This document shows, one piece after another, positions 18,135 to 36,481 of a stretch of DNA of 64,000 nt (position 1 is the stretch's first letter; the number at the start of each line of letters is the position of its first letter). Position numbers and translations under genes: made by a program. The notes beneath the pieces are model-generated. The model worked only from the letters and a program-made list of their open reading frames with translations, was not told where the DNA came from and did not search any database. The DNA is from Oculina patagonica (lineage: Eukaryota), in NCBI RefSeq assembly GCF_052425735.1, contig NC_135770.1, forward strand, positions 3,100,001-3,164,000. Reading direction: 5' to 3'.

Positions 18135-18202
18135 CTTGTCACAGAATGCAGTCTGTTGTAACTACCGGTGACGCCCAATGCCCCCATCCTCTTATAGTGT
18201 TT

Positions 18203-18409: not shown

Positions 18410-18413
18410 GGTC

Positions 18414-18635
18414 CTATTGTCGTCGCGGTCTACGTCTATAATGATTTACATTATCCATTATCCCTTTAAATCCTTGACTGGCCAATTTACCACCCAACGT
18501 GAAGAATGTGGGTGAAGGACCCGAGAGAAACATGCTGGCCCCCTCGGCTATCTTGTCCACCAAACGATGTTTACGTCTCGCGAGAGCCCCACCTCGCTGC
18601 CTCTTTCTTCTGGCCTTACGTTTCGTTCTTCCCAT
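18414..18635 (-). CDS. Arg-rich core/precursor peptide
   Basis: MGRTKRKARRKRQRGG^A, followed by an amphipathic segment. Confidence 0.65.
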   Translation of the reverse strand: MGRTKRKARRKRQRGGALARRKHRLVDKIAEGASMFLSGPSPTFFTLGGKLASQGFKGIMDNVNHYRRRPRRQ

Positions 18636-18653
18636 CCTACCATAACTGTCACT

Positions 18654-19151
18654 TCAGACGGGGGTACCTTCGGATTTATCGTGTTGTCGTTCGTACGCTT
18701 GCACGTACTTGTCGGCCACGGGCGGCGTGAAATCGGTGATCGTGTCATCTAGAGTTTGCATCTTGATCAAGAATCCTTCTAGTTCGTCCATCGGAAGACC
18801 GCGCGCGTACGTTCTCAATTCGATCAACGTCTTGTCGTAGCTGGTGTAGGCAAAACGACATACGTCCACTTTGAACGAATATTTCTTGAAATCGTTCCAG
18901 CCCTTGACGACAGTCCCAGCTGAAGTTAGGCATGCCACAATAACACTATTTTCTGTAAGGGAACCCGCAATGATACCCGCTGCCACGATGAACAAAGCCA
19001 AAGCATTCAATGAAGCATGACACCACTTAAAGTGGTAAAACATTTGACGATGACACCACCACTTTTTGTGGTAAAAGGTATACAATCCGTCCAATCTGTG
19101 TAACAGGTCTGGATTTAAGTTCGTCTTCGACCCGTTTAGTAGGGACGTCAT
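18654..19151 (-). CDS. Two-TM membrane protein (SLATT-like topology)
   Basis: Hydrophobic pair LNALALFIVAAGIIAGSL / VIVACLTSAGTVV followed by a helical soluble tail. Confidence 0.7.
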   Translation of the reverse strand: MTSLLNGSKTNLNPDLLHRLDGLYTFYHKKWWCHRQMFYHFKWCHASLNALALFIVAAGIIAGSLTENSVIVACLTSAGTVVKGWNDFKKYSFKVDVCRFAYTSYDKTLIELRTYARGLPMDELEGFLIKMQTLDDTITDFTPPVADKYVQAYERQHDKSEGTPV

Positions 19152-19153
19152 CT

Positions 19154-19555
19154 TTAATGGCTCACTCTCGTCGAGGTACGACGAACGGTTGGTCGTCCCC
19201 CGTCTTTATAGGTCGTAGTGATGGTGTTTGTCGTGGTGATGCCTGCGATGCGACGTCCAGCCGCCACTTGACGTTGATCGTTGAACAGCATTTGCAATTG
19301 ACGTTGCATGTCGTCTTGATTCAATTGGTGTGGACCACCCGTTAGCGTTCCTTGACCTACAGGTACGTTGGACCTCGAGGAAGAAGGTCTCAAAGTCCCC
19401 GTACCTACTGCAGGAGACGGTAATTGATCCAAGTACCGTCTTAGGACTATTGGGTCGATTCGATCCAATGTCTGTTCCAATCCCCCTCGGGTGACGTTGA
19501 TGATCGGAATGGCACTAGGACTGGTTCCTACTCCTGCTGGCGAATGTCTTGACAT
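19154..19555 (-). CDS. Polinton hypothetical protein (133 aa)
   Basis: Packed ORF; its stop is 2 nt from the next ATG. Confidence 0.6.
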   Translation of the reverse strand: MSRHSPAGVGTSPSAIPIINVTRGGLEQTLDRIDPIVLRRYLDQLPSPAVGTGTLRPSSSRSNVPVGQGTLTGGPHQLNQDDMQRQLQMLFNDQRQVAAGRRIAGITTTNTITTTYKDGGRPTVRRTSTRVSH

Positions 19556-19767
19556 GTCTTTCTAGCTCTCTCTTCTAATGTCTGGATCAATTCGCTGAAG
19601 TAAGTCTCGTTATATTCTCTCACGAATTTCCACATCTGGCGCTTTTCGGCCAAATGTAGCACGGTTTGCATGGCGTCGTAGTCCATGTCCTCTTCTCTCA
19701 TACGCTCGAAATGACGACTGCACAGGTCCAAGAACGCGAGCCACACGTGATCGTTACGTACGAACAT
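19528..19767 (-). CDS. Polinton hypothetical protein (79 aa)
   Basis: Packed ORF overlapping the ATPase stop and the next ORF. Confidence 0.55.
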   Translation of the reverse strand: MFVRNDHVWLAFLDLCSRHFERMREEDMDYDAMQTVLHLAEKRQMWKFVREYNETYFSELIQTLEERARKTCQDIRQQE

Positions 19768-20419
19768 CTCGAACGAATCTGTAACATCTCATGCATCCCT
19801 CGTCTTTTAAGAGGTGGCTAAAAATCCGTCTGTCGTCGCCACTGGCAGGGTGTAGATCCAATACCATGTAACCAAAGGGTCTTTCCGTCGTCTTGGTGTA
19901 GACGTCCATCACATCTTGCCATCGGGAGGGAAACGCTTGTAACAGTAAATTCCTCATGCCCAATTGATCGCGAGGGTTCTTGAAAGCCACGATGTAATGC
20001 GCATTTCGAGAAATGCTCTTGGCGTATTTTCCCGGCGGAAACATGTCTTGACACAAGTACAGGACGGTGATGTTCCTGTGGTGGGAAAGTTTGGTGAACA
20101 GATCCAATACTCTCTTGTCGTTTCCTCCTTCTTCCATCAGATCGTCCAATACCATCACCCCTCCACGGGGAAACCATTTGGTCAAATCTACTTCTTCGGG
20201 AATCCCTTCGTGAAATTTCACGCCTCGCTTTTTCATGTTCGCGAAACCGTCTTGCCAAGCCCCAAAACAATAATGAATGGTCTCAGGGGGTGTACTAAAC
20301 AACTCTTTTGAGTGATTCAAAAGTACCGACTCGGTAAAACAAGTCTTTCCGCAGCTAGAGGGGCCCACAATCAAAATGCTAGAGGGCATCCGAAAGCTAA
20401 AGGCTTCACCGCGCTCCAT
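19754..20419 (-). CDS. A32/FtsK-HerA-family genome packaging ATPase
   Basis: Walker A GPSSCGKT, Walker B VMVLDDLM, and SHHRNITVLYLCQ motif; likely start MERGEAF at 20419. Confidence 0.95.
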   Translation of the reverse strand: MERGEAFSFRMPSSILIVGPSSCGKTCFTESVLLNHSKELFSTPPETIHYCFGAWQDGFANMKKRGVKFHEGIPEEVDLTKWFPRGGVMVLDDLMEEGGNDKRVLDLFTKLSHHRNITVLYLCQDMFPPGKYAKSISRNAHYIVAFKNPRDQLGMRNLLLQAFPSRWQDVMDVYTKTTERPFGYMVLDLHPASGDDRRIFSHLLKDEGCMRCYRFVRDVRT

Positions 20420-20551
20420 GGCGAAATGACATTCGTCAAAAAACGAGCAGTGATATAAGCATGTTGCAGAAAAAAAGTCTGCAACGAATCCCGATCTCCC
20501 GAGCGACAGACGACACACACCTTATTTATTTCAACGTTTTTATTTGTCATC

Positions 20552-21121
20552 TCACAACAACAAGTGTCTTACACCGCAGAGAGACGGTTCACAATCCTGA
20601 TGGTATTCCATCTGACATATTTTGTGCCACGACCTTTCCTTCGAGATCAATTGCTTCAACATTTGCCCAACTTTATGATCATTGTACACGTAATCGTGTT
20701 TCTTGAATCTCGCTTCGAATTGACTCATGCTACGTCCTTCGGCCCTATCGATGAGATACATCAACGCGTAATCGCCGCAGCTCTGACTGTACAACGATTG
20801 TAGACTCTGTCCGTTGCGCTCCACGTACTTCCAATGAGCGTCCAACCAATCTTGCAACGGTTGCGCCGTCTGGTACACTTCTAGGGGTAAGGCGTAACTG
20901 TCCAATACTTCGCACACGTTTCCATTCGTCCACAGCGCGATCCAATGCCGACCGCGCATGTAGTGAGGATCGGTGTTGACGATGTACCCGCGGGCTTCCG
21001 TCTTGAGTGGTTTGCGAGGTAATCGATCGCAGGCCACTGTCCCGTAAAAGTAAGGCTTCAACGACGGGTGATGTCTGGCCAACTGATCCAATTGCACGTT
21101 ATTCAAAGTCACTTTCTCCAT
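20552..21121 (-). CDS. Adenain-like cysteine maturation protease
   Basis: IVNTD...GRHWIAL (His), LDSY (Asp), LQSLYSQSCG (Gln/Cys). Confidence 0.93.
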   Translation of the reverse strand: MEKVTLNNVQLDQLARHHPSLKPYFYGTVACDRLPRKPLKTEARGYIVNTDPHYMRGRHWIALWTNGNVCEVLDSYALPLEVYQTAQPLQDWLDAHWKYVERNGQSLQSLYSQSCGDYALMYLIDRAEGRSMSQFEARFKKHDYVYNDHKVGQMLKQLISKERSWHKICQMEYHQDCEPSLCGVRHLLL

Positions 21122-21123
21122 CA

Positions 21124-22527
21124 CTAACGCTGGTACACGTCGTACAACACGGCTTTGTTCTTGTCTATCTCCAAGAGATTCTCAAACTCTCCGTACACGA
21201 TGATGGTCAAGTTCACAGCTGGGTTGGCTCCAAAGTTCAGCTCTATTAGTAGATTTCCGGCTTGCTTGGGGTTCATCCTGTAACTGTCCACGCATCCATT
21301 GGCCACGTTGTCGAACACGAACAACGTGCAATTCTTTCCTTGTCCCCAATCGTCCCCTCTCACCATGTTTCCTTGCTGCTTGCACAGGCAACCGGTGGCT
21401 TGCAAGAAACGGTGGTACCCTCTGAGATCTTTGGTGCCATCGTTGTGGACCAACTCTAGCGTCTCGTAAGGATACTCTTCTCCTCCCACGAGTTGTTTTA
21501 TGCTGCTCATTCCAAACTTCTGAAAACAGAAGGGATCGTTGACCACGTTCCCGGTGAAGGCTGTGGACAGTACCATACCCACGATCACGCGGTTGGGAAT
21601 TCTTCCTTGGAACAAGTTGGTGCATTCGTACCGTCGTTGATCTCCCTGCATGTTGAAGGTCCGAATCTCGCTTCTCACGGTCGGGTAACTCACCACTTGA
21701 CTCTTGGTGGTCATCTCATCCATCAGTCTCCTGTACGTCGTGGGATTGAGACGCACTTGACACAGGTACATTCGAACTTTGACTTCCTCGGCCGTCAACT
21801 TTCCTGCCAGACCCACTCCGTTCAAGAACACGTCGGGAGAATTGAAGTACATCTGTATTCCTATCTGCACTCTGGGTACCAACAACTTGCTCAGATGAAA
21901 CACTTCGATGAGGGGTTTGAAACGCAACACGTGTCGCTTGCCGTCCGTGTAATTGGCTTGTTCTGCTTTAGAGTTCTTGAGAGCCTCCTTGTGATTGGCG
22001 GTCAGGGCTACATAGTCTGCGTGTCCAGCTCCAGCGTTGGCTGCTGTGTTCGTGTTATTGTCCGTCCACGTGGCTGGGAAATCGATATGATTGTACCATC
22101 CTTGAGGTTTCAAGATGGTTTCTCCATCACGTCTGTCGTAATTCAGCAACGTTTCCAAGAAGGCTCTGTAATGGTACGTGTCCGTCTGGGGACTGATGAG
22201 AGTACCGTTGAGACGCACGCTGATTTGCTTGAACAGAGAATGGGCTAGATTGTTGACGGGCCACAACAAGTCGGCAGCTGCCACGTTCCCATCGTTGTCT
22301 TTCTTCAGTTGCAATTCTACCTCGAAGAAGCTACGGCTGAGATCGATGTAATCTTCTTGGGGGTCGATCTGAAACTCCACCGGATTGATGCCTGTGGTGT
22401 AGGTCTGAACGGGGACCATCCGATACGACGAGACGCTGACGTCTGTCGGTGGTACGGCGAATAGATCCAATCGAGGATTGGCCTCGCGTCTCGACTGCGG
22501 GTAGGCGCTCGAGATGGTTTCGGTCAT
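21124..22527 (-). CDS. Major capsid protein (double jelly-roll)
   Basis: LDLFAVPPTD, PVEFQI, YIDLSRS, PVNNLAHSLFKQI, YHYRAFLETLLNY, IPNRVIVGMV, and VYGEFENLLEID motifs; likely start at 22527 (ATGA overlap). Confidence 0.93.
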   Translation of the reverse strand: MTETISSAYPQSRREANPRLDLFAVPPTDVSVSSYRMVPVQTYTTGINPVEFQIDPQEDYIDLSRSFFEVELQLKKDNDGNVAAADLLWPVNNLAHSLFKQISVRLNGTLISPQTDTYHYRAFLETLLNYDRRDGETILKPQGWYNHIDFPATWTDNNTNTAANAGAGHADYVALTANHKEALKNSKAEQANYTDGKRHVLRFKPLIEVFHLSKLLVPRVQIGIQMYFNSPDVFLNGVGLAGKLTAEEVKVRMYLCQVRLNPTTYRRLMDEMTTKSQVVSYPTVRSEIRTFNMQGDQRRYECTNLFQGRIPNRVIVGMVLSTAFTGNVVNDPFCFQKFGMSSIKQLVGGEEYPYETLELVHNDGTKDLRGYHRFLQATGCLCKQQGNMVRGDDWGQGKNCTLFVFDNVANGCVDSYRMNPKQAGNLLIELNFGANPAVNLTIIVYGEFENLLEIDKNKAVLYDVYQR

Positions 22528-22760
22528 CGTCTTCTCTTCCTTCTTGCACGGCGCTTCCGTAAGGTCTGTATCCAGTCGTAGCCAGGAGGCTTTCTGACCT
22601 CGGGACCTATCCACCCGCCCTTTTGTACTTTTCGTCGTCGCCTCTTTTGTCCCAACAAGGCCTGGTTCAAAAGTGCCAGTGAGAATCCTTCTCCCCGCTG
22701 TCTGACGGGGGCGCGTTTGGATCGGACCAATTTAGACGATCGCGAGTAAACGGGATTCAT
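22524..22760 (-). CDS. Arg-rich core precursor with two protease-like sites
   Basis: QRGEG and QKGG motifs; poly-Arg C-terminus; ATGA overlaps at both ends. Confidence 0.7.
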   Translation of the reverse strand: MNPVYSRSSKLVRSKRAPVRQRGEGFSLALLNQALLGQKRRRRKVQKGGWIGPEVRKPPGYDWIQTLRKRRARRKRRR

Positions 22761-23014
22761 TTTTCGCCAAAGATGTCGTTCAGTTTTCTCTTGACGTTTC
22801 GTTCTATGACGTTTTTCAGTTTGCGTTTCACGACTCGTTTAGGACCACTCTTGGCTCCTTGACCCGCTTTAAGAATGCGGTCCGCGACGCCGCGCCCACT
22901 CTTAAATCCTCTCACGGCTCCACCGAGAGACTCTCTCACGATGTCGGCCAAAAATCCGTTCCCCTCTTGAGGTGGAGGATCCGGTGTGAAACGCGTCAGG
23001 GCACCGCCTCTCAT
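22757..23014 (-). CDS. Small virion precursor with amphipathic helix (pVI-like position between penton and MCP)
   Basis: QEGNG followed by FLADIVRESLGGAVRGF; basic C-terminus ending DIFGEK. Confidence 0.7.
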   Translation of the reverse strand: MRGGALTRFTPDPPPQEGNGFLADIVRESLGGAVRGFKSGRGVADRILKAGQGAKSGPKRVVKRKLKNVIERNVKRKLNDIFGEK

Positions 23015-24045
23015 GTTCGCTTGATATGTAGGGTCACGATCGTGTTGCCTTCGCCAAAATCCACCAGTTTACCTGTAGTCTCGCTCACTTGCGTTTCAAT
23101 AATGTCCACAATCTGGTTGCGGAGTGGAATATATTGTATGTGGAGAGGTTCAAAGTACTTGATACCTTTTCCTTCACGTTGAAAGTGAATTTCCCGCAAC
23201 AGATCCGTGACTTGATTTCCCACAACGGAACTACCACCCACATCTGAGTAAACGAAAAGCGTACGCGATGCATCTCCAATCACTTTTTGGAAGGCTCTGT
23301 TGAGTTTCACAAAGCGCCAGTTACAATAGCAACTCAAGAAAAGCTGTCCATTCTCAACAACCCAGAAATTTTTCTTGCCCTCTCCAAAATCATCCACGTC
23401 TATGGGATCGGGTATCGTAGCGTGGTGGCATTCCGGCTTCAGGTTCGGCCCGAGAAACACGTTTTCTTTCTCGTCCTTTTTTACCCATCCCATGTCAAAG
23501 GCCAAATCCTCGTTGAAAGACATGTAATATGGGACGCCTTCAGTTTTCACTTCCGAGACGTCCAAGTTCGAGTTGTCGAGGACTAGTTCTTCACCTTCCC
23601 ACTTGAACGTATATTCCCACTGCTTTCCATTATCGGGCGACTTGGTCAAGTCTCCCACGATACGCTTGTATTCTTTGACTTGATCGAACTTGAAGACCAG
23701 GGCTTTCATGAAACTGAGGCCATCCACGATGTTGTCGTCATATAGAATGTCCTGGAACGTCAGATCGGTGGTCACCGACTTGCTTTGCACGCGACCCTCC
23801 TTGTCTTTGCGCTTGAGCATCCACTGGGCACTCAAGAGAGGAAACTTGAACGACTTAAAGCGAGTTAAGTCGATGCTGGCATCTGGCACGGAAATGCTAC
23901 TCAATCCCACTTTCCAACCGGTTCCTTCCAATCGTAGCGGGTGAGGTAATCGCACCTTGAAAGAGTTTGCTCTATTCTCTGGAAACTCGGTTCCGCTGCT
24001 GTGACTGGGTAACGTGACCGTAAACTCCTGTCGGTCGTGGCTCAT
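23011..24045 (-). CDS. Minor capsid protein (penton, single jelly-roll)
   Basis: FTVTLPSHSS..FPENRANSFKVRLPHPLRLEG.WKVGL at the N-terminus; LFVYSDV..VVG...LLREI...YIPL...TIVTLHIKR at the C-terminus. Confidence 0.9.
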   Translation of the reverse strand: MSHDRQEFTVTLPSHSSGTEFPENRANSFKVRLPHPLRLEGTGWKVGLSSISVPDASIDLTRFKSFKFPLLSAQWMLKRKDKEGRVQSKSVTTDLTFQDILYDDNIVDGLSFMKALVFKFDQVKEYKRIVGDLTKSPDNGKQWEYTFKWEGEELVLDNSNLDVSEVKTEGVPYYMSFNEDLAFDMGWVKKDEKENVFLGPNLKPECHHATIPDPIDVDDFGEGKKNFWVVENGQLFLSCYCNWRFVKLNRAFQKVIGDASRTLFVYSDVGGSSVVGNQVTDLLREIHFQREGKGIKYFEPLHIQYIPLRNQIVDIIETQVSETTGKLVDFGEGNTIVTLHIKRT

Positions 24046-25121
24046 GATTTTTTTAGAGCCGTCTTCTCGATCCAGCTGTCGTACTTGTCTGGCCAGCCTT
24101 TCCAGTGCACCAAGACTTTATTTCCTTTTCGTTTGACGATCTTGTCCACCCTGAAGACATCGTCGTCGGACACTGCGACTTTTTGTAGATCTTCCTTGTA
24201 AAACGTACCGCGAAGGGGGGTGTCGTCCAACTCTTGGATCTTGTAAGTCGTGACGGGTGGTCCCCGACGCACCTCTCGTATCACAAACACTTCTTCGGTC
24301 CAGCCGGGTAAATACCCTTTCTCGAACGTGCGAAATTTCTTGTTCAATCTCACGCGTTCTCCCACTTTTAGCGGGGGTTTTCGTTCTCTTTTACCCGACG
24401 ACAATCTCTTCGCGTACAGACGTTCCCACACTTTTCCTTCGTTGCTCGCATTCACTGTCTCGGGGCTGGTGCCGATGCTACGATGGTGGGATCCGTTGTA
24501 ACCTTTCACCAAGGCCTGGAGTACAGGTAGGTAACTGAGCGTGTTCTTGGCGGTAAAGTATCGGTACATGCGTTCCTTGAGAGTGCGGTTGAAGCGTTCC
24601 ACGGTGCTGGCTTTGGTATCTCCGGCCGTGGAAAAGTGGTGGATGCCTTCCCGTTTCATCAACGCGGCAAACGTCTTGTTGTAAAATTCTTTCCCGTCGT
24701 CGGTCTGTAGGTTCTGAGGTTTGCGTCCATCGGCTCGTTTCAAAATCTTGGCAAAGGCGTCCGACACCGTTTTTCCCGTCTTGTCTTTTAGGGGTTCCAC
24801 CCAGGCATATTTAGACAAGACGTCGATCACGTTGAGTAGATATCTGTGACCCTTGTTGTATTTGGACAACGGTTGCGTTTCCACTAAATCGGCTACCCAC
24901 TGCTGGTCGACGTTAAACACCAGGACCGGTAACGTGGCGAAACGACGTCTGCGCGGTTTGTGAAGGGTATAACCCAAATCGCGCTCCAATACTTTTTTGG
25001 CTGTGTCGACGGATATCTTGTGCGATTTGGCGAATCTTGTTATCCCACCCAAGCTACCCGGTTGACTGGGATCGTGGTAGTCCGAAAGTATTTTTTCATC
25101 CTTTTTCAGCTTCTTTGGCAT
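24042..25121 (-). CDS. Retroviral-like (rve) integrase with C-terminal chromodomain
   Basis: DDE motifs WVADLV, QTDDGKEF and VERFNRTLK; GYLPGWTEEVF; chromodomain VDKIVKRKGNKVLVHWKGWPDKYDSW. Confidence 0.97.
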   Translation of the reverse strand: MPKKLKKDEKILSDYHDPSQPGSLGGITRFAKSHKISVDTAKKVLERDLGYTLHKPRRRRFATLPVLVFNVDQQWVADLVETQPLSKYNKGHRYLLNVIDVLSKYAWVEPLKDKTGKTVSDAFAKILKRADGRKPQNLQTDDGKEFYNKTFAALMKREGIHHFSTAGDTKASTVERFNRTLKERMYRYFTAKNTLSYLPVLQALVKGYNGSHHRSIGTSPETVNASNEGKVWERLYAKRLSSGKRERKPPLKVGERVRLNKKFRTFEKGYLPGWTEEVFVIREVRRGPPVTTYKIQELDDTPLRGTFYKEDLQKVAVSDDDVFRVDKIVKRKGNKVLVHWKGWPDKYDSWIEKTALKKS

Positions 25122-25417
25122 GTCGACGACGCTCTGACCACCCTCATATAAGTGCCGTGTAATTTATGAGCTGCCTCTTCGATCGTGGTCGGATGAAGTT
25201 TGTAAATAGAAGCAAACAGCTCGTCTGGATCCTTGAAATGTCTCAACCATAATATAAACGGTATCAATCTGAAATAGTTTTTTTCTATGTGAGTGGCTTC
25301 GAACACTCTCAAGGGGGAGTCACTTGTATCTTCCGGTATATCTATACCCCTCCCAAATTCAGCATACGCTTTCTCGCACAACCTTTTCAACCACTCCCAC
25401 TTTCCATACAGATCCAT
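25106..25417 (-). CDS. Polinton hypothetical protein (103 aa)
   Basis: ATG ORF overlapping the integrase start. Confidence 0.55.
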   Translation of the reverse strand: MDLYGKWEWLKRLCEKAYAEFGRGIDIPEDTSDSPLRVFEATHIEKNYFRLIPFILWLRHFKDPDELFASIYKLHPTTIEEAAHKLHGTYMRVVRASSTCQRS

Positions 25418-25443
25418 GACAAATGAACTTTTATTTCAAAACG

Positions 25444-26220
25444 TCAATTTAAATAGCCTGCATCAATAAATATGTTATCAAAAGATTTTGTACATGTTTC
25501 GCAACTTCTAGGTCTCCACAGTTTGGCTTTTTGGTAGTCGTCGCCCAGGTAAGCTTCGTCTTTATCCATGGCGCAACGGTTGCAGAGATCTCTGTCTAAC
25601 AGTCTATCCGCTATTTCTTGCCAGCGATTGCTTTCTAGGCGTTGCAATTTTACTTGAGTTGCCAGTTGGTTGCACAGTTCTTCGTACGTGTTTGCGTCGA
25701 CCGTGATGGGTTGTTTCAAGTAAGCAGACAATGTCTGGCTTAGGGCTACACTCGCTCTCAACGGGGCGATGAGATCTTCTAAACCACTCCGGTCGTCAAA
25801 GTCGCAGACGTTCGCGTTCAACCAGAACGAGACGCCGTTGCCAATGGGCGGCGGTTTGCGAGACCTCGCGAAGAAAAAGGTTCGCTGCAATGGCACGTAG
25901 ACAAATTCATTCCAATGTCTATCCCAGAGATAACCGTGCCCAATGTCTTTGAGGGTCGTTAGGACGGCTCCCTTCCAGTGAGGGTTCTCTTTGAGCCATT
26001 CACTTTCGGTGACGCGGTTTTTGGCACACCCGCGCTCTTTCACCATGTCCTCGAAGACATAGACTCTCCTTGGAATGTTTTCGGGTATGGTGGTGGTGGT
26101 GGGAAAGTCTAACGACAACACAGTGATTCCCGTGTCGGTCTGGATCTTTTTTTCTAGCTTTGTACAATTGGTGTAGAAGAGTTGTTGTTCCAGGTCCATC
26201 CAGTTTTCTCTCGTACCCAT
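25444..26220 (-). CDS. Accessory protein with coiled coil and CxxC-CxxC (possibly a divergent Bro-N-like segment)
   Basis: Likely start MGTREN, 1 nt after the upstream stop; CNRC...CETC; AATAAA at 25430-25435. Confidence 0.65.
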   Translation of the reverse strand: MGTRENWMDLEQQLFYTNCTKLEKKIQTDTGITVLSLDFPTTTTIPENIPRRVYVFEDMVKERGCAKNRVTESEWLKENPHWKGAVLTTLKDIGHGYLWDRHWNEFVYVPLQRTFFFARSRKPPPIGNGVSFWLNANVCDFDDRSGLEDLIAPLRASVALSQTLSAYLKQPITVDANTYEELCNQLATQVKLQRLESNRWQEIADRLLDRDLCNRCAMDKDEAYLGDDYQKAKLWRPRSCETCTKSFDNIFIDAGYLN

Positions 26221-26221
26221 G

Positions 26222-26497
26222 TCACTGCTCTTGGCTTGCTTCGGCCGAACCTTTGTGTAATGCACTCTCCAGATCACACATCCAATGCTCTTGACACTGC
26301 ATAAACGTGTAGCCGGCTTCCATGCCACGTTTCGCGCGCTCCAATAGGTAATCTTCGTCCGATTGATAATCGCCCCTTTTTAGATCCCTATAGTAAGGCA
26401 ATGGTTCCCAGTCCTTGGGATCTCCTTGTACAAAGACACCGTTGACTTGTGGGGTTTGAGTTTGAGTTTGGCTGGAATCGCTCTCTGTGCTTTCCAT
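26222..26497 (-). CDS. Small accessory protein, first ORF after the leftward TATA/Inr
   Basis: ATG just downstream of the Inr at 26504-26509. Confidence 0.6.
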   Translation of the reverse strand: MESTESDSSQTQTQTPQVNGVFVQGDPKDWEPLPYYRDLKRGDYQSDEDYLLERAKRGMEAGYTFMQCQEHWMCDLESALHKGSAEASQEQ

Positions 26498-26503
26498 CGC
26501 TAT

Positions 26504-26678
26504 AACTGAGTCGACAAATGGACGCGCAGCTCTTTTTATACGTTGGATGACGTCACCTGGGTCATTGCCGGTTGGTCGGAAGAGGTCACGTGTTACCTCT
26601 CTGGTTGGTTCGTGCGTATTGACGTCATCCGAGAGTAGAGTATAAAAGCGCCGTGTTGTCTCCTGTTAGTCCTCAGTT
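26504..26678. promoter_or_regulatory. Symmetric bidirectional Pol II promoter
   Basis: Inr(-) 26504-26509, TATA(-) 26533-26540, CRE 26548-26555, E-box 26585-26592, CRE 26620-26627, TATA(+) 26641-26647, Inr(+) 26673-26678. Confidence 0.8.
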
Positions 26679-26695
26679 GGAGCATCGAGAGCACC

Positions 26696-27604
26696 ATGGA
26701 CGTAGCAGAACCCAAAAAAAAGCGACAGAGGAGAGGGACTGGAAACCCCAAGAAACCCAAAGTCCCCCGTAAAAAGAGACATCCTACAAAGAAGAAGATG
26801 GAGTTGAAAGAGGAAGTGTTGGAGGAGGGTGAAATTTTCGACCCCGACCAGTTCCTACAACAGACCTTTGACGACACGGAGCGCGACCCGGTTTGCCCCG
26901 TCCACAAAGAACCGCTGACCAAGAGAATGACGGACGGGGGATGGGAGTTCTACTTTTGCCCCCACACGAGCGAAGGCACCATCTGTTTCATTTGCACCGG
27001 TAGCGCCCACATTGACCAGTACGTGGTGGCGGTCAATCAACAATTACCGGCTTACTATTATTGGAACATGGATAAGATGAAATGTTACTGCAACGAGAGT
27101 CTCATTCTGAGCATGTCGAAATCAGAGAGCAACCCGAACAGGATCTACCTCAAGTGCAGAAAAGGGAAATGTCGGTTCTTCCAATGGGCAGACAGTCTTC
27201 CGTTTGGCAAGATCAAAGCCTGGCTGGAAGGAAAGGAATATGTGGGAAACGAGGATCCCCTCTACTCGAGAAGGTCTGGACTGGACTCTAGGGACGAATT
27301 TGGATACCCCAGAAGAGGACAAGACGTGGTGGATAGACCGCAACGAATTCTGGATGGGAGACCCGCCTTCAAAGTACAACACTACCCACCCCCGGTCAAG
27401 GATTGGATTGGTGATCTTCCCTTGGACGAGTCATTGGTCAAACAGTGTCAAGAGCAAAAGTTTTGGGTGGATGGAGAAGGGAAAATTATTCTTCCCCCGG
27501 AATTGGCTGGCGTGAAGTACGACTCGGATGAAGAGAAAATGCTGAGAAATCAACTGTATCTGAGATGCATTTCCCAGAAACAATATCCTAATTTGGATCA
27601 TTGA
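26696..27604 (+). CDS. zf-GRF zinc-finger protein with basic NLS-like N-terminus
   Basis: CYCNESLILSMSKSESNPNRIYLKCRKGKCRFFQWAD fits zf-GRF; a second related finger reads CPVH...WEFYFCP...CFIC. Confidence 0.8.
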   Translation: MDVAEPKKKRQRRGTGNPKKPKVPRKKRHPTKKKMELKEEVLEEGEIFDPDQFLQQTFDDTERDPVCPVHKEPLTKRMTDGGWEFYFCPHTSEGTICFICTGSAHIDQYVVAVNQQLPAYYYWNMDKMKCYCNESLILSMSKSESNPNRIYLKCRKGKCRFFQWADSLPFGKIKAWLEGKEYVGNEDPLYSRRSGLDSRDEFGYPRRGQDVVDRPQRILDGRPAFKVQHYPPPVKDWIGDLPLDESLVKQCQEQKFWVDGEGKIILPPELAGVKYDSDEEKMLRNQLYLRCISQKQYPNLDH

Positions 27605-27684
27605 CCCCATGGCTTAAGAGATTTAGAGTTTAAACATTTTCATATATTTTCTACGTCAAGCATCAGAGTGCAGTTGGCTCTGGC

Positions 27685-28206
27685 ATGACTCCGGAAAACG
27701 TGTGCATGATCTTGGACTTGGAAGGTTACTTTGTGGAGAAGACGTTTCGAGTACGCGAGTTGGGTTATTACACTTGGCAAGAAAAGTTCGGACGCCATGC
27801 TTTCTACATGAGAATGTCGTGGTGCAACTTATCTTCCAGAGACAGGAAAACCGTGTCTTACGTCAAATACAACGTGCACGGACTGACGTATCAACCCAGA
27901 AAGGAAGAAAAGGCCTACGAGTATGACAGGGTGGAGGAGGTGATGTGGGATTTGTACGAGGAAACCAAAACCCCCGAGAGAACCGTGGTGGCTTACAAGG
28001 GAGGACACGTAGAAAGAGACTTGTTGAACAAACTGAACATTCCTAGCGTGAATTTAGAACTGTACGGATGTCCGAAATACGACGTGTTGAAAGAGACAAT
28101 TGTAGAACCTTTACCTAGTTGCGGTTTTCATCTAAACGAAGGACATTGTCCAATGACCGAATGTCATGCTTTCTGGTTATGGTACCAGACTTTTGTTGTT
28201 AAATAA
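27685..28206 (+). CDS. DEDDh-like nuclease of the arenavirus-NP/Maelstrom type
   Basis: ILDLEG...VRELG, AYKGGHVERDLL, SCGFH...GHCPMTEC; AATAAA overlaps the stop. Confidence 0.7.
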   Translation: MTPENVCMILDLEGYFVEKTFRVRELGYYTWQEKFGRHAFYMRMSWCNLSSRDRKTVSYVKYNVHGLTYQPRKEEKAYEYDRVEEVMWDLYEETKTPERTVVAYKGGHVERDLLNKLNIPSVNLELYGCPKYDVLKETIVEPLPSCGFHLNEGHCPMTECHAFWLWYQTFVVK

Positions 28207-28294
28207 ATTTAAGAATTGCTCCATGCCAAAACTGAATTACGAGAGTAATGGGATTCAATCGCTTAAAAAAACTTAACAACAACAACAAATACCG

Positions 28295-28995
28295 CACGCT
28301 AAATTATATTTTTTCGCGAACGGTGAAAATCACAACAAAGTCGATGACACTTGTGCTTAGAGTCCAAAAATATGAAATTTTCGGCTCAATAACATTCATC
28401 GAAATAATATCTTTTATGGTTGGACATCCTTTTTGATTTAAGGGCCGCAAAAAAAAAAAAAAAAACATTTGAACAACGGCCGAATGAACCACCTACAACA
28501 ATTATATTTTTAGCGGCCGGTGAAAAATCACAACAAACTCGTTGACACACTTGTTTAGGGTGTAAAAAATGTGAAAGAGTCGGCTCAATGACTTGCTTTG
28601 AGATTCACTATAATAATATCATTCATGGTTAGACGTCCCTTTGATATAAGGGTCGCAAAAAAAAAAATTATTCGAGAAAAATGCATTTGAACAACGGCCA
28701 AACGAACCTCACGCTAAAATTATATTTTTTCGCGAACGGTAAAAATCACAACAAAGTCGTTGACACACTTGTTTAGAGTCTAAAAATGTAAAAGAGTCGG
28801 CTCAATGACTTGCTTTGCGTTTTACTAAATTAATACCATTCATGGTTGGACATCTCTTTGATTTAAGGGCCGAAACAAAAGTTTTCCTCGAGAATAATGC
28901 ATTTGAACAAAGGCCAAATGAACTGCACGCTACAATTATATTTTTTCGCGACCGGTGAAAAATCACAACAAAGTCGTTGACACACTTGTTTAGGA
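28295..28995. repeat. Internal tandem array of ~195-220-bp units (3 full + 1 partial)
   Basis: Recurring AATTATATTTTTTCGCGAACGGTGAAAATCACAACAAAGTCG...CGGCTCAAT...CATTTGAACAACGGCC near 28295, 28491, 28711 and 28928. Confidence 0.85.
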
Positions 28996-29508
28996 TTTAC
29001 AACGTTTAAGCTTCACTTCTAGGTGGCTAGGTTTTATTTTTCTTTCTGAATCATAGTGGGATGTTCCCTCGATTTTGAGACCGCGAAAAGAAAAGATGAA
29101 GGCGTTTGAAGTTGTTGTTGTTTACGAAAGACAACGACAACTGCGCGAGCAATTTCGCTTAAAAGAATAATTCAGTCCACCAAAAACGACTTGTTTATTC
29201 GTAAAGTTCGGTTTCTTCTTTTTTTGACCATAAACACAATTGACCAAAAAACCTTGAACGAAATGAACGGGTCTAAAACCTTCTTCTTCTTTACTTTGCA
29301 CGGTTCATGATGGCCGCACGAACAAAAACAAACCACTCGTCAAAATTTACAACGTAACCAAATTTATTTTTCGCAGTGAATACAATTTATCAAACGCTCT
29401 TCGTCTTGTACAGTAGAGTATGGAGACATTAGCTCACCTTAAAGCTTATATCCTTCTTGAAAAGAGCTGTAATCCGACAAGAAAACTTCGTCCGTTTTTA
29501 CTGTACTT

Positions 29509-29865
29509 TTCCGAGAATGAACACACGCGGGTTCCTAGAATTCCGAGAATTCCGAGAAAGATTCTCCACGCGCGTGCGTCGGGATTTTTCCCTTGGGGGA
29601 AAATCCCGGGATTTTACCCTTGTGGGAAAATCCCGTCAGCTTGGGAGTTTACCCGTGTGGGGAAAATCCCGTCAGCTTGGGATTTTACCCTTGTGGGGAA
29701 AATCCCGTCACCTTGGGTGACATTGATCGTGAAATCTCATTGGTTCATTCTGTACACGTCACCTCGAAAAAGAATGGACCGAGTATTTAATTGGTTATAA
29801 TAAAAAGTAAATCTGATTGGTTAACTCTCTCTATATAACGCGAGCTCCGCTTGACTTTTGTCACT
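29509..29865 (+). promoter_or_regulatory. Putative pPolB promoter/enhancer: 4 GAS + 8 kB-like sites + 3 inverted CCAAT + TATA + Inr
   Basis: TTCnnnGAA at 29509, 29532, 29541, 29550; GGGAAAATCCC at 29597, 29624, 29660, 29696; GGGA(T/G)TTT(T/A)CCC at 29581, 29608, 29643, 29679; ATTGG at 29739, 29790, 29816; TATATAA at 29832; TCACT at 29861. Confidence 0.75.
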
Positions 29866-29900
29866 CGCAAACTTTGTTTGGTCTGAGCGCTCATCAAGAC

Positions 29901-30185
29901 ATGGAAAAAGAGAAGACTTTGGAGGAGCCTGGAATTGAGATGGAAGAACAGTTGGAGGAGCCTGGAATTGAGATACGAGACGAAGATGAAGAGGTGGACG
30001 TATTTGGAGACGATGAAAAGGAAGACGAACCTGTCAAGAGAGCAAGATTACAGGTTAGCACGTGGTTGAATTCATCGCTCGTTTGCAACGTAAGTTCTTA
30101 CATTGTGTTTTTGTTTTTGTTGAAGATTGAGAATGAAAAATCGCCGGCCACAACAAGCGGTGCTTCAAGCACTTCGGACGAAGAG
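29901..30185 (+). CDS. Putative exons 1-2 of pPolB (29901-30053, 30126-30185): acidic leader with NLS-like PVKRARL
   Basis: CAG|gttagc...ttgaag|ATT and GAG|gtaaat, both phase 0; splices in frame to the acceptor tttcaag|ATG at 30999. Confidence 0.65.
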
Positions 30186-30998
30186 GTAAATGGTTATTGT
30201 CCAATGAAATAAAAGAAAAATTTATTGGGAGGCAGACTTCATGCATGTGGATTTGAAAATCGATCACCAGTGAAGGAAAAGATGTGACGATTATAAACTT
30301 AACTGACCTGCGCATCATACTGTATTACAACGGCTATGTTTTCCGAGTAAAATGCAATGCTAAAATAAGAGAATGAACGATGTAATTATCATGGCAATTA
30401 TCAACAATGTTTGAAACTGCAAACGTCGTTAACAATATTAGACTAAATGCCTTTTATAGACATGCACAAAATCCTTACTCTACATCAATTTCATTTTTAT
30501 TCGCCACCTTTGATTTTGACGTCTTTCACATGTATGACGGGTGAATGAGATTTGGAAGGATCAGTTGAAGACAAAAAAAAAATGTGAAGTAAATTTTAAG
30601 TACTTGTTTGTGCAAGTAGTCGATTACTGATCGACAAGGTCGTAGTCATTTCATGGTTTAGGAGCCGACTACGTTCCTCCCTCCCTGCTTGCACATGCGT
30701 TAATGAAGATGCTTGATTGCAACAAACAACCCATCAATCATATCTGGCAATACCCAAGCCAATCAGAAGACCTGCTGTCAATCAAAATCTGTCAAACCTG
30801 TGAAATAGCTAGCATCTCGAGCCGGTATGTAATAGTCCGAATATAAACGTTGTGATCGGTTAGGTCGATAACATGTAATTCTCGTTTTTAGAATAAATTA
30901 AAAAAGAAGCGTGTTGGAAGAGTGCTGGTGACTGGTATAGATAAAAAACGTGCATTGTTTTTACCATCCATTTATTGCTTTGTTTTCTTTGTTTCAAG

Positions 30999-33900
30999 AT
31001 GGATGTTCCCTTTGAATTTCAATTGAGAGGTCACGTGGACCGCAGAGTACGCAGATTTGGTCTCCACATCAGAAACTTTACCGGACGACTGGTGCAGACA
31101 GGTGGTGGTGCCGCAGTGGAATCCGTTCCCCTAGGACCGCGACCCGTATTAGTACAGCAGATTGCCAGAGCCCTGCAGAGAGCCGTGCAGCAACATATTT
31201 TGGATGATGGAGCCGTTGGAGATGACGATCACTTGTTGATCAACATCAACAGTAACAGGATTCAAAATGCTTTTCATTCCAGACGGCTGAGAGTGGGAGA
31301 GTGGAGAGAAAACACCGTTGCTGCCCAACAGCTGTTAAAACAAATCAGTGACATGTTGAACAGTAATCAGACTTTTCAAGTCGACGACACGTTCAATCTA
31401 AACGTGTCTCACATACAAGATCCAGGCAAAGGTGGAGATAACCAGAAATACAAACCCGGTTTGGACCCCATCGAGACCATATTGGAGAAAAAGCGATGCG
31501 TGTTGAAAATCAAAAACACGGATCAATTATGCTGTGCCCGCGCCTTGGTGATGATGAAGGCCCGTGCCGATTTCGGGACCGACCATTGGTATTACAAGAA
31601 TGTCCGTGGAGCATACCCCATCCAAGAAAAGGCAGCCAGAGAGTTGCATCGTTTGTCCGACGTGCCAGAAGGTCCTTGCGGCTTGGACGAATTGGCCAAA
31701 TTTCAAGCGCACTTGAACGACTACCAGATTGTGGTGGTGTCTGTCCAACATGGGTACCAGATCATCTTCAAAGGAGCACAACGCCCCGACGACAAACGTT
31801 TGATCTTGATCAAGCACCATGACCATTACCACGGCTGCACTTCCCTAGGCGGATTTTTTGGCAAGAGTTATTATTGCACCCAATGCGAAAAAGGGTTTTC
31901 GCACGACAATCAGAAAGAACACCGCTGCCCGGGTGCCAGGTGCGCCGCCTGCCATCAGACAGATTGCCACGAATGGAAGAGAGCCCACGCTGTACCCAGG
32001 GTGAACTGTACAGACTGTCAACGGGACTTTTTTGGAACCCGCTGTCTTCAATTGCACAAGAGTCGCACCGACACGGGCAAAGACATGGCCCGAGACAAGA
32101 GGAACAGTGTGTGTGACAAGCACAAACGGTGTACGGGCTGTTTCAAGACCTACGGTGACTATGAACTGAGAAACAGTCACAAGTGCGGCCACGCTCTCTG
32201 CCCGTCCTGTAAGGAATACCAAGATCTTCGTTACCACCAGTGCTACATACAAAATCCTCTCAAGGTGGAACAAAAACAGAACCGCAAGAGAACCAGCGCC
32301 GGTCAACGCAAAGAAGACCAACCACCCGTGTTCGTCAGTTGGGACGCCGAAGCCAGGCAGGAAGAAGGCCAGCACGTCGCCAACTTGATTTGCGCCCTGA
32401 GAGGAGACACCGACGAGAGGAGAACCTTCGAGGGAGAGACTTGTGTCAAAGACTTCCTCGCTTGGTTGAGGGAGATCGCCGAACAACACCGCGTCATAGC
32501 CGTCGCCCACAATTTTCAGGGCTATGACTCTTACTTCATACTAAACGAGTTGTACGACCAAGCCATCTGCCCTGACCAAGTCGTCAATGGTGCCAAAATA
32601 ATCAGCATGAACATCCCAAACATCACCTTTAAAGACTCCATGTGTTTTCTGCAGATGAGCCTTGCTACCTTTCCCAAAGCCTTTGGCCTCACCGAGCAAA
32701 AGAAGGGGTTTTTCCCCCACTTTTTCAACACGAAGGAAAACCAAAACTATGTGGGCAGCATGCCTGCCAGAGACTATTACGATCCAGAGGGAATGTCCGC
32801 TGCCAGGAAAGCCGAATTCGACAAGTGGTACGAAGAACGCGTCGCGGAGAATTACGAGTTCTACTTTCGGAACGAACTTGTCGACTACTGTCGCTCGGAC
32901 GTGGAGCTGTTGCACGAAGGTTGCAAGGTCTTCCGGGCAGAGTTTCAAGCCATTGCCGGGTTCGATCCCATGGACCAGTGCCTCACCATTGCCTCGGCCT
33001 GTAATCGCTTCTACCGCACCAAGTGCATGCAAGAACAGACGTTGGCTTCTGAACCGGTACGAGGCTGGGAAGGCAAGGGCAAACCTCACTCCCTGGTGTC
33101 GCTGGAATGGTTGCTCTATCAAGACACCCAGACGCAGGGCACCATCCGCCACGCCAGAAACGGTGGAGAACGAGCCTTATGGATTGGAGGCCGTCTGATG
33201 AACGTCGACGGGTACGAGGATCACACGGTTTACGAGTTCCACGGCTGTTACTTTCACGGCTGTCCTGACTGTTTTCCCAATCGCGATCAGAAGCACCGGA
33301 AGATGGGCGACAGAAGCTTGAGGGACGTGTACGCGGAAACGCAACAAAAGAGCCAACGGATCCGGGATGCGGGTTACCGCGTGGTAGAAATGTGGGAATG
33401 CCAGTGGAAAGCGCTCAAGGACAATGATCCCGAGGTGAAATCGTTCGTGGACTCGTTGTCGATCAACTCCCGCTTGGAGCCGAGAGACGCCTTCTTTGGC
33501 GGTAGAACCAACGCCGTCCGCCTCTATGACCTTGCCCAACCAGAAGAAGAGATCCGGTACGTGGACTTTACCTCGTTGTATCCATTTGTCAACAAAAACT
33601 GTGACTACCCTCAAGGGCATCCCGAAGTGATCCTAGAACCGGGACACACGAACATTTCACAATTCTTTGGTCTGGCAAAGTGTACCGTGACGCCGCCCTA
33701 CGGGTTGTACAGCCCCGTGTTGCCCTATCGCCAAGGGGGTAAACTGACATTCCCCCTCTGCCGTACCTGCGTGGAAGTGGAGCAGCCGAAGCCATTGACC
33801 CAACGATCCTCCAAATGCGCTCACAGCCCTCAAGAACGCCAACTGACCGGAACGTGGTGCACGCCCGAGTTGGAAGAGGCCGTCAAGCAAGGGTACGTGG

Positions 33901-34865
33901 TGGAGCACATTCACGAGGTGTGGCACTTTGACCGCAAATCCAACACCATGTTTAAAGAGTATGTCAACACCTTCCTGAAGATGAAGCAGGAAGCGAGCGG
34001 CTGGCCCTCGTGGGTGGGCGACGATCCAGACAAACGCCAGGAATACCTGACACAGTTCTTTCTCAAAGAAGGCATCCAGTTGGATCCGGACAAGATTGAA
34101 AAGAATCCCGGACGCAGATCCCTGGCCAAGATCATGCTCAATAGTTTTTGGGGCAAGTATGGTCAGAAAGGCAACAAGAGCCAAGTTGAAGCCTTCACCT
34201 CTGCAGCTGAGTTTCACGATTTGTTGAGAGACGATTCTCGAGACATCCACGACATCCGGGTCGTCAATCCAGACATGTTGGAGGTGGTCCATAAGTGCAA
34301 GGAGGACTGTGCCAACATTCAACCGGACATAAACATCTTTGTTGCCTGCTTTACCACCACCTGGGCCCGTTTGAAGTTGTACCAGGAAGGTCTTTCCATC
34401 CTACAACCCGAACAGATCTTGTATTTTGACACGGATTCTCTCATCTACAAGCATCGAGAAGGCCAACCCTCCTTACCATTGGGAGATTACCTAGGAGACT
34501 TTACCAACGAACTAGACGATGATGACTTCATTGTGGAATTTGCCGCCGCCGGACCAAAAAACTATGCCTACAAGACGAAGCTGGGAAAAACCTGTTGTAA
34601 AGTAAGGGGTTTTTCCTTGAACGTGAGAGGATCCGCCCATCTCAACTTTGAGACATTGAAAGACAACGTCAAATCCGAAGTGAAAGAACCCTTGGCCGAA
34701 ACGAGGAGCATTGCCGTGTTCAACCCTCACAAGATCACCCGAGACAAAACGACCAAAACCCTGAACACTGTGACGGAGATCAAGCGCTATCAAGTGGTTT
34801 TCGACAAGAGAGTGGTAGATGCCAACACCTTTATGTCATACCCCTATGGTTACTTTAACGCCTAG
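30999..34865 (+). CDS. Protein-primed DNA polymerase B (with N-terminal TP/vOTU-like and Cys-rich regions and a nested VSR-like nuclease insert)
   Basis: Exo motifs WDAE, AHNFQGYD, YCRSDV; Pol motifs YVDFTSLYP, KIMLNSFWGK, YFDTDS, KNYAY; IKNTDQLCCARAL; insert VDGY..TVYEFHGCYFHGC...EMWECQW. Confidence 0.97.
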   Translation: MDVPFEFQLRGHVDRRVRRFGLHIRNFTGRLVQTGGGAAVESVPLGPRPVLVQQIARALQRAVQQHILDDGAVGDDDHLLININSNRIQNAFHSRRLRVGEWRENTVAAQQLLKQISDMLNSNQTFQVDDTFNLNVSHIQDPGKGGDNQKYKPGLDPIETILEKKRCVLKIKNTDQLCCARALVMMKARADFGTDHWYYKNVRGAYPIQEKAARELHRLSDVPEGPCGLDELAKFQAHLNDYQIVVVSVQHGYQIIFKGAQRPDDKRLILIKHHDHYHGCTSLGGFFGKSYYCTQCEKGFSHDNQKEHRCPGARCAACHQTDCHEWKRAHAVPRVNCTDCQRDFFGTRCLQLHKSRTDTGKDMARDKRNSVCDKHKRCTGCFKTYGDYELRNSHKCGHALCPSCKEYQDLRYHQCYIQNPLKVEQKQNRKRTSAGQRKEDQPPVFVSWDAEARQEEGQHVANLICALRGDTDERRTFEGETCVKDFLAWLREIAEQHRVIAVAHNFQGYDSYFILNELYDQAICPDQVVNGAKIISMNIPNITFKDSMCFLQMSLATFPKAFGLTEQKKGFFPHFFNTKENQNYVGSMPARDYYDPEGMSAARKAEFDKWYEERVAENYEFYFRNELVDYCRSDVELLHEGCKVFRAEFQAIAGFDPMDQCLTIASACNRFYRTKCMQEQTLASEPVRGWEGKGKPHSLVSLEWLLYQDTQTQGTIRHARNGGERALWIGGRLMNVDGYEDHTVYEFHGCYFHGCPDCFPNRDQKHRKMGDRSLRDVYAETQQKSQRIRDAGYRVVEMWECQWKALKDNDPEVKSFVDSLSINSRLEPRDAFFGGRTNAVRLYDLAQPEEEIRYVDFTSLYPFVNKNCDYPQGHPEVILEPGHTNISQFFGLAKCTVTPPYGLYSPVLPYRQGGKLTFPLCRTCVEVEQPKPLTQRSSKCAHSPQERQLTGTWCTPELEEAVKQGYVVEHIHEVWHFDRKSNTMFKEYVNTFLKMKQEASGWPSWVGDDPDKRQEYLTQFFLKEGIQLDPDKIEKNPGRRSLAKIMLNSFWGKYGQKGNKSQVEAFTSAAEFHDLLRDDSRDIHDIRVVNPDMLEVVHKCKEDCANIQPDINIFVACFTTTWARLKLYQEGLSILQPEQILYFDTDSLIYKHREGQPSLPLGDYLGDFTNELDDDDFIVEFAAAGPKNYAYKTKLGKTCCKVRGFSLNVRGSAHLNFETLKDNVKSEVKEPLAETRSIAVFNPHKITRDKTTKTLNTVTEIKRYQVVFDKRVVDANTFMSYPYGYFNA

Positions 34866-35049
34866 TACTACCCACTAGCTCGTATGGGGCATGCTGTTGT
34901 GTCCAACAGCATGCCCCAGATGGGAAACCTACCGCAACACGTTGATATAGTTTCAATCGTACCCACGTTGATCGTTCTCCATAACTGAATATTTAATAAC
35001 TTACTTGTCGACATCTTTTGAGATATAAACACTCTCACCGCTCGATTCG

Positions 35050-36144
35050 TACTCGTTCCCAGTAAAACCGAGAAAGGGGGATACCCCCTCATCCCCCCTC
35101 TCTGACGTGTTTTTTTTTTTAATACTTCACAAGCGTGCGTTTTTTCAGAATCGCCGTAAAAGCAATGTAGACTCATCTGCGCATGCGTTTAGTGCCAGGA
35201 AGAACCATACCATAAGGAAGGCATGGCGCTTTCTGAGACAACCTTTGTGGTCTTCACAAGAGAGGTAACTAATTATCAATCGTGAGTGTATCGCGTAGAC
35301 TCATCTGCGCATGCGTTTAGTGCAAAGTATTGAGTTCCAGATACCACAAGGACAGTATGGCACTTTGTGAACCATATCTATAGGATGGTGGTCTTGCTAA
35401 CTTTGTACACGTTCACTCCCAGGGTGCGCGGCCACTAGGGCTTAGTGAACATTGACACAAGGAAAAAAAAATATCCCCAGCGAGGACTCGAACCTCGATT
35501 GCCTACCTCAGCGGCAGGAGTGATACCCGTTACACTACCGGGGCTTTAGGACCACTTGTTACCGTTTTTTAGTGTCTTGTACCTTAACAGAAAAAACCTG
35601 TTATTAAAAAAAACCTGTTTTTACACCTATTTTCTTGTCTTGTCGTTTTTTTTCCGCGCGAGGACTGGGACCAAGTTCATTCTAACCGTTCGGGGACTGG
35701 GACCGACACTCCAAGGACCCTGGGACCGACTCCTATGACGTCATCACACCCCTAAGTCACGTGGTTTTCCCTTCTACGCCTATTTTCTTGTCTTGTCGTT
35801 TATTTTTTTCGCGCGGGGACTGGGACCGAGTTCATTTCCACCGTCCGGGGCCTGGGACCGACACTCCAAACACCCTGGGGCCGACTCCTATGACGTCATC
35901 ACACCCCTAAGTCACGTGGTTTTTCCTTTTACGCCTTTTTACACCTATTTTCGGATTTTTTTTCCGAGGGGGACTGGGGCGAGCGCTTTTTGACCGGCCG
36001 GGGCCTGGGACCGACACTCGGACCACCCTGGGACCCACTCCTATGACGTCATCAACACCCAAGTCACGTGATTTTCCTTTCTACGCGTGCGCAGAAATGC
36101 TGCGCTGTGATTGGCTACTTGAACATATAAGCGGTCCTTACTAC
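35050..36144 (-). repeat. Right terminal inverted repeat of the Polinton
   Basis: Reverse complement of the left TIR; ends GGTCCTTACTAC and is followed by a rearranged extra terminal segment (36145-36475). Confidence 0.93.
35473..35544 (-). tRNA. Identical tRNA-like gene in the right TIR
   Basis: Exact reverse complement of 15771-15842, including the oligo-T terminator. Confidence 0.8.
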
Positions 36145-36481
36145 ATTACTCTATTATTCGCGCGGGGACTGGGGCGAGCGCTTTTGGCCGCTTATATGTT
36201 CAAGTAGCCAATCACAGCGCAGCATTTCTGCGCACGCGTAGAAAGGAAAATCACGTGACTTGGGTGTTGATGACGTCATAGGAGTGGGTCCCAGGGTGGT
36301 CCGAGTGTCGGTCCCAGGCCCCGGCCGGTCAAAAAGCGCTCGCCCCAGTCCCCCTCGGAAAAAAAACCGAAACTAGGTGTAAATAGGCGTAAAAGGAAAA
36401 ACCACGTGACTTAGGGGTGTGATGAAATGCTGCGCTGTGATTGGCTACTTGAACATATAAGCGGTCCTTACTACTTGTATC

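Follow-up and report, generated by a model that had tools for sequence, protein, structure and literature searches.

Retroviral LTRs and herpesvirus immediate-early enhancers are built from repeated kB sites. In adenoviruses, the E2 early promoter carries paired inverted host-factor sites ahead of the polymerase transcription unit. NF-kB sites are listed in retroviral LTR and herpesvirus promoters, and the ie1 promoter of the white spot syndrome virus (WSSV) is driven by the shrimp NF-kB protein Dorsal (PMC3171479). One study places adenoviruses and Polintons in the same virus lineage, the Bamfordviruses (PMC10328495), and endogenous mavirus has been proposed as a model for the Mavericks of animals (PMC8097293). 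The transcription of animal Polintons/Mavericks is essentially undescribed, and a literature search returned no paper that ties these elements to NF-kB or STAT sites. Here, we describe the region upstream of the DNA polymerase gene (pPolB) of a Polinton/Maverick from Oculina patagonica. It lies in a stretch of 64,000 nucleotides that was analysed as a whole and is called the window below. The original prediction had read two kinds of repeated motif in this region, GGG...CCC palindromes and TTCN3GAA sites, as an enhancer through which host innate-immune or stress signalling turns on the replicase of the element. The motifs are found where they were said to be, and they form a repeat-built module that immediately precedes a CCAAT/TATA/start-site core promoter and a leader exon. 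Who reads this module is discussed with graded confidence. We tentatively favor, with a little less than even confidence, an upstream activating module that was amplified by duplication and is read by a host factor, with NF-kB as the leading candidate.

The element that contains the module has the features by which a Polinton/Maverick is recognized, i.e., long terminal inverted repeats (TIRs) of ~1.1 kb, an integrase of the retroviral type with an rve core, and a protein-primed type-B polymerase (Table 1). Its ends were placed by the TIRs and by the point at which the alignment with the sister copy L001 stops. The sequences flanking the two ends agree at only ~4 of 6 positions and a clear 6-bp target-site duplication is not seen. 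For the polymerase, 188 relatives were found, the nearest of which belong to O. patagonica. The genome of this coral carries many copies of the Polinton, and the nearest public copies are located there. The packaging ATPase, the protease, and the capsid protein are putative assignments that follow the usual Polinton gene set, and the 496-aa ORF assigned to the capsid has no Pfam match. Sister copies with a pPolB of only 63-70% identity retain the 173-aa ORF at 98-99%. The element is compact except for a 1.7-kb non-coding stretch upstream of the motif module. This stretch holds the 217-bp tandem repeat, which is found in sister copies at 80-91% identity and partly in L005. On the minus strand, a 165-aa ORF (18654-19151) matches SLATT_1, an effector domain of conflict systems with two transmembrane segments, with E = 3e-4 and 21.2 bits, below the cut-off of 26.3. 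Outside the element, a pair of older inverted repeats with ~82% identity (9716-12970 and 36492-42714) brackets the Polinton. These outer repeats are not part of it, and what is left of another inverted-repeat element may enclose or adjoin the Polinton.

Table 1. Features of the Polinton and of its pPolB upstream region; positions are those of the window, and a dot marks features without strand.
Feature	Position	Strand	Remarks
Polinton/Maverick element holding the motif module	15169..36145	.	~21 kb
Left TIR	15170..16269	.	~97-100% complementary to 35047-36144
Three ORFs, putative ATPase/protease/capsid	19754..22614	-	Pfam matches sub-threshold only
Putative packaging ATPase	19754-20518	-	Pox_A32, E = 0.07, sub-threshold
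Putative adenovirus-type protease	20552-21124	-	Peptidase_C5, E = 0.011, sub-threshold
Putative capsid protein, 496-aa ORF	21124-22614	-	
Integrase	24042..25121	-	rve core (PF00665) and chromodomain
GRF zinc-finger protein	26696..27604	+	domain search
173-aa ORF	27685..28206	+	final gene ahead of the non-coding stretch
217-bp tandem repeat, ~3 copies	28286..28993	.	Tandem Repeats Finder
Distal TTCN3GAA site, TTCCGAGAA	29509..29517	+	degenerate in L005 and L011
9-bp tandem repeat x3, three abutting TTCN3GAA sites	29532..29558	+	sites at 29532, 29541, 29550
Array of four palindromic units	29581..29706	.	units, and their left arms, start at 29581, 29608, 29643, 29679
Perfect palindrome GTCACC-TTG-GGTGAC	29707..29721	.	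ends the array
Three inverted CCAAT boxes	29739..29820	+	ATTGG at 29739, 29790, 29816
TATA box	29832..29838	+	TATATAA
Conserved start-site/5'UTR box	29861..29891	+	29 bp past TATA; transcription start predicted from sequence
pPolB exon 1, 51 codons	29901..30053	+	ATG at 29901; GT donor after
pPolB exon 2, 20 codons	30126..30185	+	AG/GT borders; equivalent exon in P0136 and P0001
pPolB exon 3, main ORF	30999..34865	+	type-B DNA polymerase domain (PF03175), E = 1.5e-47
Right TIR	35047..36144	.	partner of the left TIR

The pPolB gene is divided into three exons. That the leader ATG splices into pPolB had been part of the original prediction, and the three-exon layout indeed matches the submitters' gene models of sister copies. 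Since the layout is the same in these models, the pPolB introns are common to relatives. The first exon encodes an acidic leader that ends in KRARLQ, and the same peptide is found in the sister models P0136 and P0131. Exon 3 opens at its ATG right after an AG, and both junctions are in phase 0. This exon has an unbroken reading frame and is 96% identical to P0001 of Oculina patagonica, its best public match.

Comparison of copies supports the anatomy of the core promoter. In 7 copies, the start-site box follows the TATA box by 28-29 bp, and the window contains it a single time. Even two relatives from other samples, L004 (1171-1200) and L006 (3388-3416), have it in nearly invariant form. The box is the best conserved non-coding sequence that was seen, and it holds a short internal inverted repeat. 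Two variants of the core promoter are found. One contains three ATTGG boxes and TATATAA, while the other contains ATTGG, CCAAT, and TATAAAA (L001, L002, L009). Both variants put TATA 28-29 bp ahead of the same start-site box. The first ATTGG box is conserved out to L004. Across copies, the leader exons and the variants of the core promoter have been reshuffled. In L004, the promoter precedes the polymerase ORF by ~3.8 kb, and this distance points to a long leader with several exons. In the same contig, short repeated coding-like segments with splice-like borders are seen upstream of the pPolB ORF (3000-4700). In the distant relative L007, a tRNA-His (GTG) gene (4856-4929) sits between a promoter-like region and the pPolB ORF. 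The Logan contig L008 gave no start-site information; it carries splice-acceptor-like sequence upstream of its coding region and hence looks genomic rather than like a transcript.

The motif module is found 120-320 bp upstream of the core promoter, which is strongly conserved. A sequence scan of the window recovered every motif listed in the original prediction at the position given for it. Each unit of the array is comprised of a 12-nt left arm GGGA(T/G)TTT(T/A)CCC, a loop of 4-5 nt, and an 11-nt right arm GGGAAAATCCC. Within each unit, the right arm is nearly the reverse complement of the left arm. The four right arms begin at 29597, 29624, 29660, and 29696 and so lie 27, 36, and 36 bp apart; together with the left arms they bring the GGG...CCC sites to eight. 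The palindrome that closes the array has a CACGTG variant in L010, L011, and L005. The CACGTG hexamer, as read from L010 and L011, is presumably an E-box. When a 151-nt stretch is considered as single-stranded DNA, it folds into four hairpins and a fifth palindrome (-45.2 kcal/mol, z = -8.4). Tandem Repeats Finder resolves the cluster into the 9-bp x3 repeat and a 27/36-bp array. The 12 sites are therefore copies of two small units and not 12 independent events. A search of the IMG/VR viral contigs with the palindromic unit gave 0 matches, and a search of JGI metagenomes gave 4 matches, all of which are unrelated bacterial intergenic hairpins. A pPolB segment had no match among viral contigs, and Rfam returned no known RNA family for positions 28000-31200.

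With at most one mismatch, GGGAAAATCCC occurs 9 times in the window where 1.3 are expected, and 0 of 100 shuffles reach 9. For TTCN3GAA, the window as a whole shows no enrichment (29 sites, 32 expected). Once duplicates are collapsed, one consensus-fitting kB site in 300 bp has a nominal P of ~0.03 and at least two TTCN3GAA sites have a nominal P of ~0.006, both before any multi-motif correction. Some transcription-factor motif will match any 400-bp promoter, and this is counted against the account of an activating module.

Eight copies of the element were compared. Seven are from O. patagonica (L001, L002, L003, L009, L010, L011, and the window family), and L005 is a copy from another assembly. 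Both motif types are found upstream of pPolB in all eight, across pPolB genes that are 63-96% identical at the nucleotide level. A copy has 1-4 palindromic units and 2-4 TTCN3GAA sites, and the number differs in almost every copy. The 9-bp repeat is present two to three times in sister copies, and one TTCCGAGAA is invariant in 8/8. Of the 20 units, 16 share one right-arm sequence and 13 share one left-arm sequence; the loops come in 7 variants and the spacers in 4. This lower variation of the arms hints at a possible constraint on them, with the arm/loop split having been set by a pattern match that is biased toward conserved arms. For L002 and L009, identity to the window is 88-99% over the 2 kb that precede the module, a stretch that takes in the 173-aa ORF and the upstream non-coding region (27685-29720), but only 63-70% over the nucleotides of pPolB. 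These copies are thus mosaics that exchange the module region, which implies frequent recombination between co-resident Polintons. With 80-84% identity in L003, L005, and L011, the module fares no better than the non-coding DNA next to it (76-82%). Because the flanks are about as conserved as the module, the conservation is not specific to the motifs, and together with the mosaic exchange this means that it may result from recombination rather than selection. Loss of the motifs with kept flanks, which would have spoken against the original prediction, is not seen among the eight copies, and neither is conservation of the motifs in particular. More distant relatives are informative about the age of the module. 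The pPolB genes of L004 and L006 are 60-64% identical to that of the window, and the start-site box and the CCAAT/TATA core are present in both. Their promoters have neither a kB-like array nor TTCN3GAA, and the pPolB promoter of L007 likewise has no TTCN3GAA. The core without the array in L004 and L006 marks the module as a lineage-specific addition to an older core promoter.

For the NF-kB reading, the consensus GGRRNNYYCC and an expanded 11-mer were taken from the Nematostella NF-kB paper. The STAT and heat-shock patterns used in the scans were likewise taken from papers. GGRRNNYYCC is matched by all four right arms, whichever strand is read, and these arms supply 4 of the 11 matching positions found in the 64 kb of the window. 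The left arms, all four of the form GGG-N6-CCC, are off the consensus. Hence the right arms are candidate kB sites, but the proposed total of eight was inflated by the left arms. In L003, all six arms are of the N6 form and 0/6 fit. The 11-mer present in three units of the window (reverse strand; 29596, 29659, 29695) is among the published Nematostella microarray sequences. There, it scores z = 1.96 with Nematostella NF-kB in vitro (rank 45 of 803) and z = 3.79 with human RelA, which is among the best on the array. The remaining arm forms are absent from the published Nematostella array. A kB reading is credible, by sequence fit, for half of the sites. The feature that is conserved is looser than a kB site: it is a GGG-(A/T)-CCC inverted pair with variable spacing.

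The kB consensus is also matched by a separate block of ~22 nt, in which a G-run, an AT stretch, and a C-run follow each other. Within the window, this block is found at 35076-35098 (plus strand) and mirrored at 16228-16240 (minus strand), in either TIR and ~30 bp inward of its inner edge. It lies just downstream of pPolB in L001 (12765), L002 (12460), and L010 (7448). In the distant relatives L004 (1019) and L007 (4748) it is upstream of pPolB, with 21 of 22 positions identical and flanks that cannot be aligned. The block was considered as the ancestral counterpart of the Oculina array and rejected, since in Oculina it is in the TIRs downstream of pPolB. For the same reason, it is a separate element and is not counted as a conserved kB site at the pPolB promoter. 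Its occurrence at different positions makes GGG...CCC palindromes a recurring conserved cis-feature of this clade. This recurrence could reflect a broad link to Rel-type factors and could equally reflect a different, perhaps element-specific, reader.

The original prediction combined NF-kB and STAT sites into one enhancer, by which immune or stress signalling would switch on the replicase, with the element acting as an escape sensor or a defensive virus. By analogy with known viruses this is conceivable, and we regard it as unlikely. The right arms fit the kB consensus and include the microarray-bound 11-mer, and all four TTCN3GAA sites have the published form of a STAT site, TTCN3-4GAA (PMC3670263). 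Animal Mavericks have already been proposed as inducible defensive viruses (PMC8097293), and circumstantial evidence comes from Anemonia viridis, in which a Polinton-like transcript and NF-kB p100 are both up at low pH. The STAT part is the weaker one: the sequence form was read correctly, but the 9-bp repeat looks like the slippage product of a single ancestral site, and TTCN3GAA is absent from distant relatives. The distal site is lost in L005 and L011, where two TTCN3GAA sites are embedded in a longer direct repeat. The abutting sites are spaced 9 bp center to center, at which neighboring STAT dimers would clash. A review restricts the canonical JAK architecture, and the assembled pathway with it, to Bilateria and describes an anemone STAT that has no transactivation domain. 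When the single STAT of the anemone was knocked down, its response to cGAMP stayed the same, and this study found that anemone NF-kB is required for antibacterial and not antiviral genes. The congener Oculina arbuscula has a regulated NF-kB whose level is lower in symbiosis, which speaks for a Rel-type reader. Cnidarian NF-kB also has developmental and symbiosis roles, and these count against the combined model. Induction by immune signals and pPolB as the rate-limiting step can only be inferred here. The same GAA/TTC repeat would make a heat-responsive promoter if it were a heat-shock element, and its alternating TTC and GAA triplets do recall one. This is extremely improbable, as neither GAANNTTCNNGAA nor its complement has a match with at most one mismatch in 29400-29910, and the triplets are spaced 6 and 3 nt, off the 5-nt register.

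Other readings concern the palindromes themselves. They may be read by a factor outside the Rel family, either a host dimer or a protein of the element such as the GRF zinc-finger protein, so that the likeness to kB sites is coincidental. The conserved inverted pair with its variable GGG-to-CCC spacing (N5, N6) has no fixed kB geometry, the array has strong hairpin/cruciform potential, and GGG...CCC palindromes are general in the clade at several positions (in the TIRs here and upstream of pPolB in L004 and L007). Against this, the right arm agrees well with published NF-kB sites, and the loop length of 3-5 nt across copies argues against a rigid dimer that spans both arms. No candidate for such a reader was identified; to our knowledge, and by simple inspection, none of the CSL/Su(H) paired sites, EBF/COE, E2F, ETS, IRF, or NFAT fits both arms. 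We consider a non-Rel reader rather unlikely, yet it has a better chance than the combined NF-kB and STAT enhancer. The repeats may also have no reader at all, if slippage and unequal exchange have produced a neutral minisatellite and the promoter functions without the palindromes. Copy number that varies in almost every copy, the nearby 217-bp tandem repeat, and distant relatives that have the core promoter without the module are in line with such neutrality. Like the non-Rel reader, it is still a live rival, though quite unlikely: at least one palindromic unit and one TTCCGAGAA are kept in all eight copies, even in the most diverged L005 and L011 with their neighboring insertions, and variation is lower in the arms than in the loops and spacers.

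The module is most likely a promoter enhancer, to judge from its sequence and position. According to the explanation that we favor, tandem duplication would have built an upstream activating module of pPolB that is specific to one lineage of coral Polintons. The arms would be sites for a sequence-specific host factor, and a Rel-homology dimer of the NF-kB type is the most probable reader. Each duplication of a unit would add sites and may thereby raise the output of the promoter. The TTCN3GAA repeat would be a younger addition whose reader is uncertain. The cue that the module reports could be infection, stress, symbiotic state, or cell type. The inverted-pair design and the hairpin potential exceed what NF-kB needs, and another reader could be involved.

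The locus offers a promoter anatomy that is supported by copies: a shared core with its start-site box, a spliced acidic leader, and a family-specific module built from repeats. The core and the start-site box are common to coral Polintons whose polymerases are only ~60% identical. If NF-kB reads the module, the activity of coral Polintons could be linked to bleaching, infection, or symbiotic state. If it does not, the locus illustrates how motif clusters made by repeats can mimic designed enhancers. A wider idea is that a family of young, intact-looking Polintons in a reef coral has both acquired and amplified Rel/NF-kB-type and possibly STAT-type elements ahead of its polymerase gene, so that its expression would follow the immune, stress, or symbiosis state of the host. 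This appears unlikely; if it were true, a host-signal-responsive promoter would be described for the first time in an animal Polinton.

The coral Polinton can be placed beside the systems described at the outset. WSSV is a DNA virus of a marine invertebrate whose key early promoter, ie1, has host NF-kB-type sites, through which immune signalling of the host feeds into viral expression; the kB-like arms upstream of pPolB may be comparable. However, activation by the host factor has been measured for WSSV, which is exogenous, whereas the Polinton is integrated and known from sequence alone. Compared with ie1, the sites of the Polinton form a tandem palindromic array in which half of the arms are off-consensus. 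Retroviral LTRs and the immediate-early enhancers of herpesviruses resemble the module, with its candidate sites, in that short, repeated host-factor sites lie immediately upstream of a TATA promoter; this is a likeness of design only and not homology. The endogenous mavirus of Cafeteria is, like the coral element, integrated and Polinton-like, and its genes are silent until a specific cue arrives. The trigger of mavirus is a giant virus in the same cell and not a host immune transcription factor, and we know of no helper virus for coral Polintons. Although the host factor differs, the adenovirus E2 early promoter is like the promoter of this Polinton, whose polymerase gene would also be under an inverted pair of host-factor sites.
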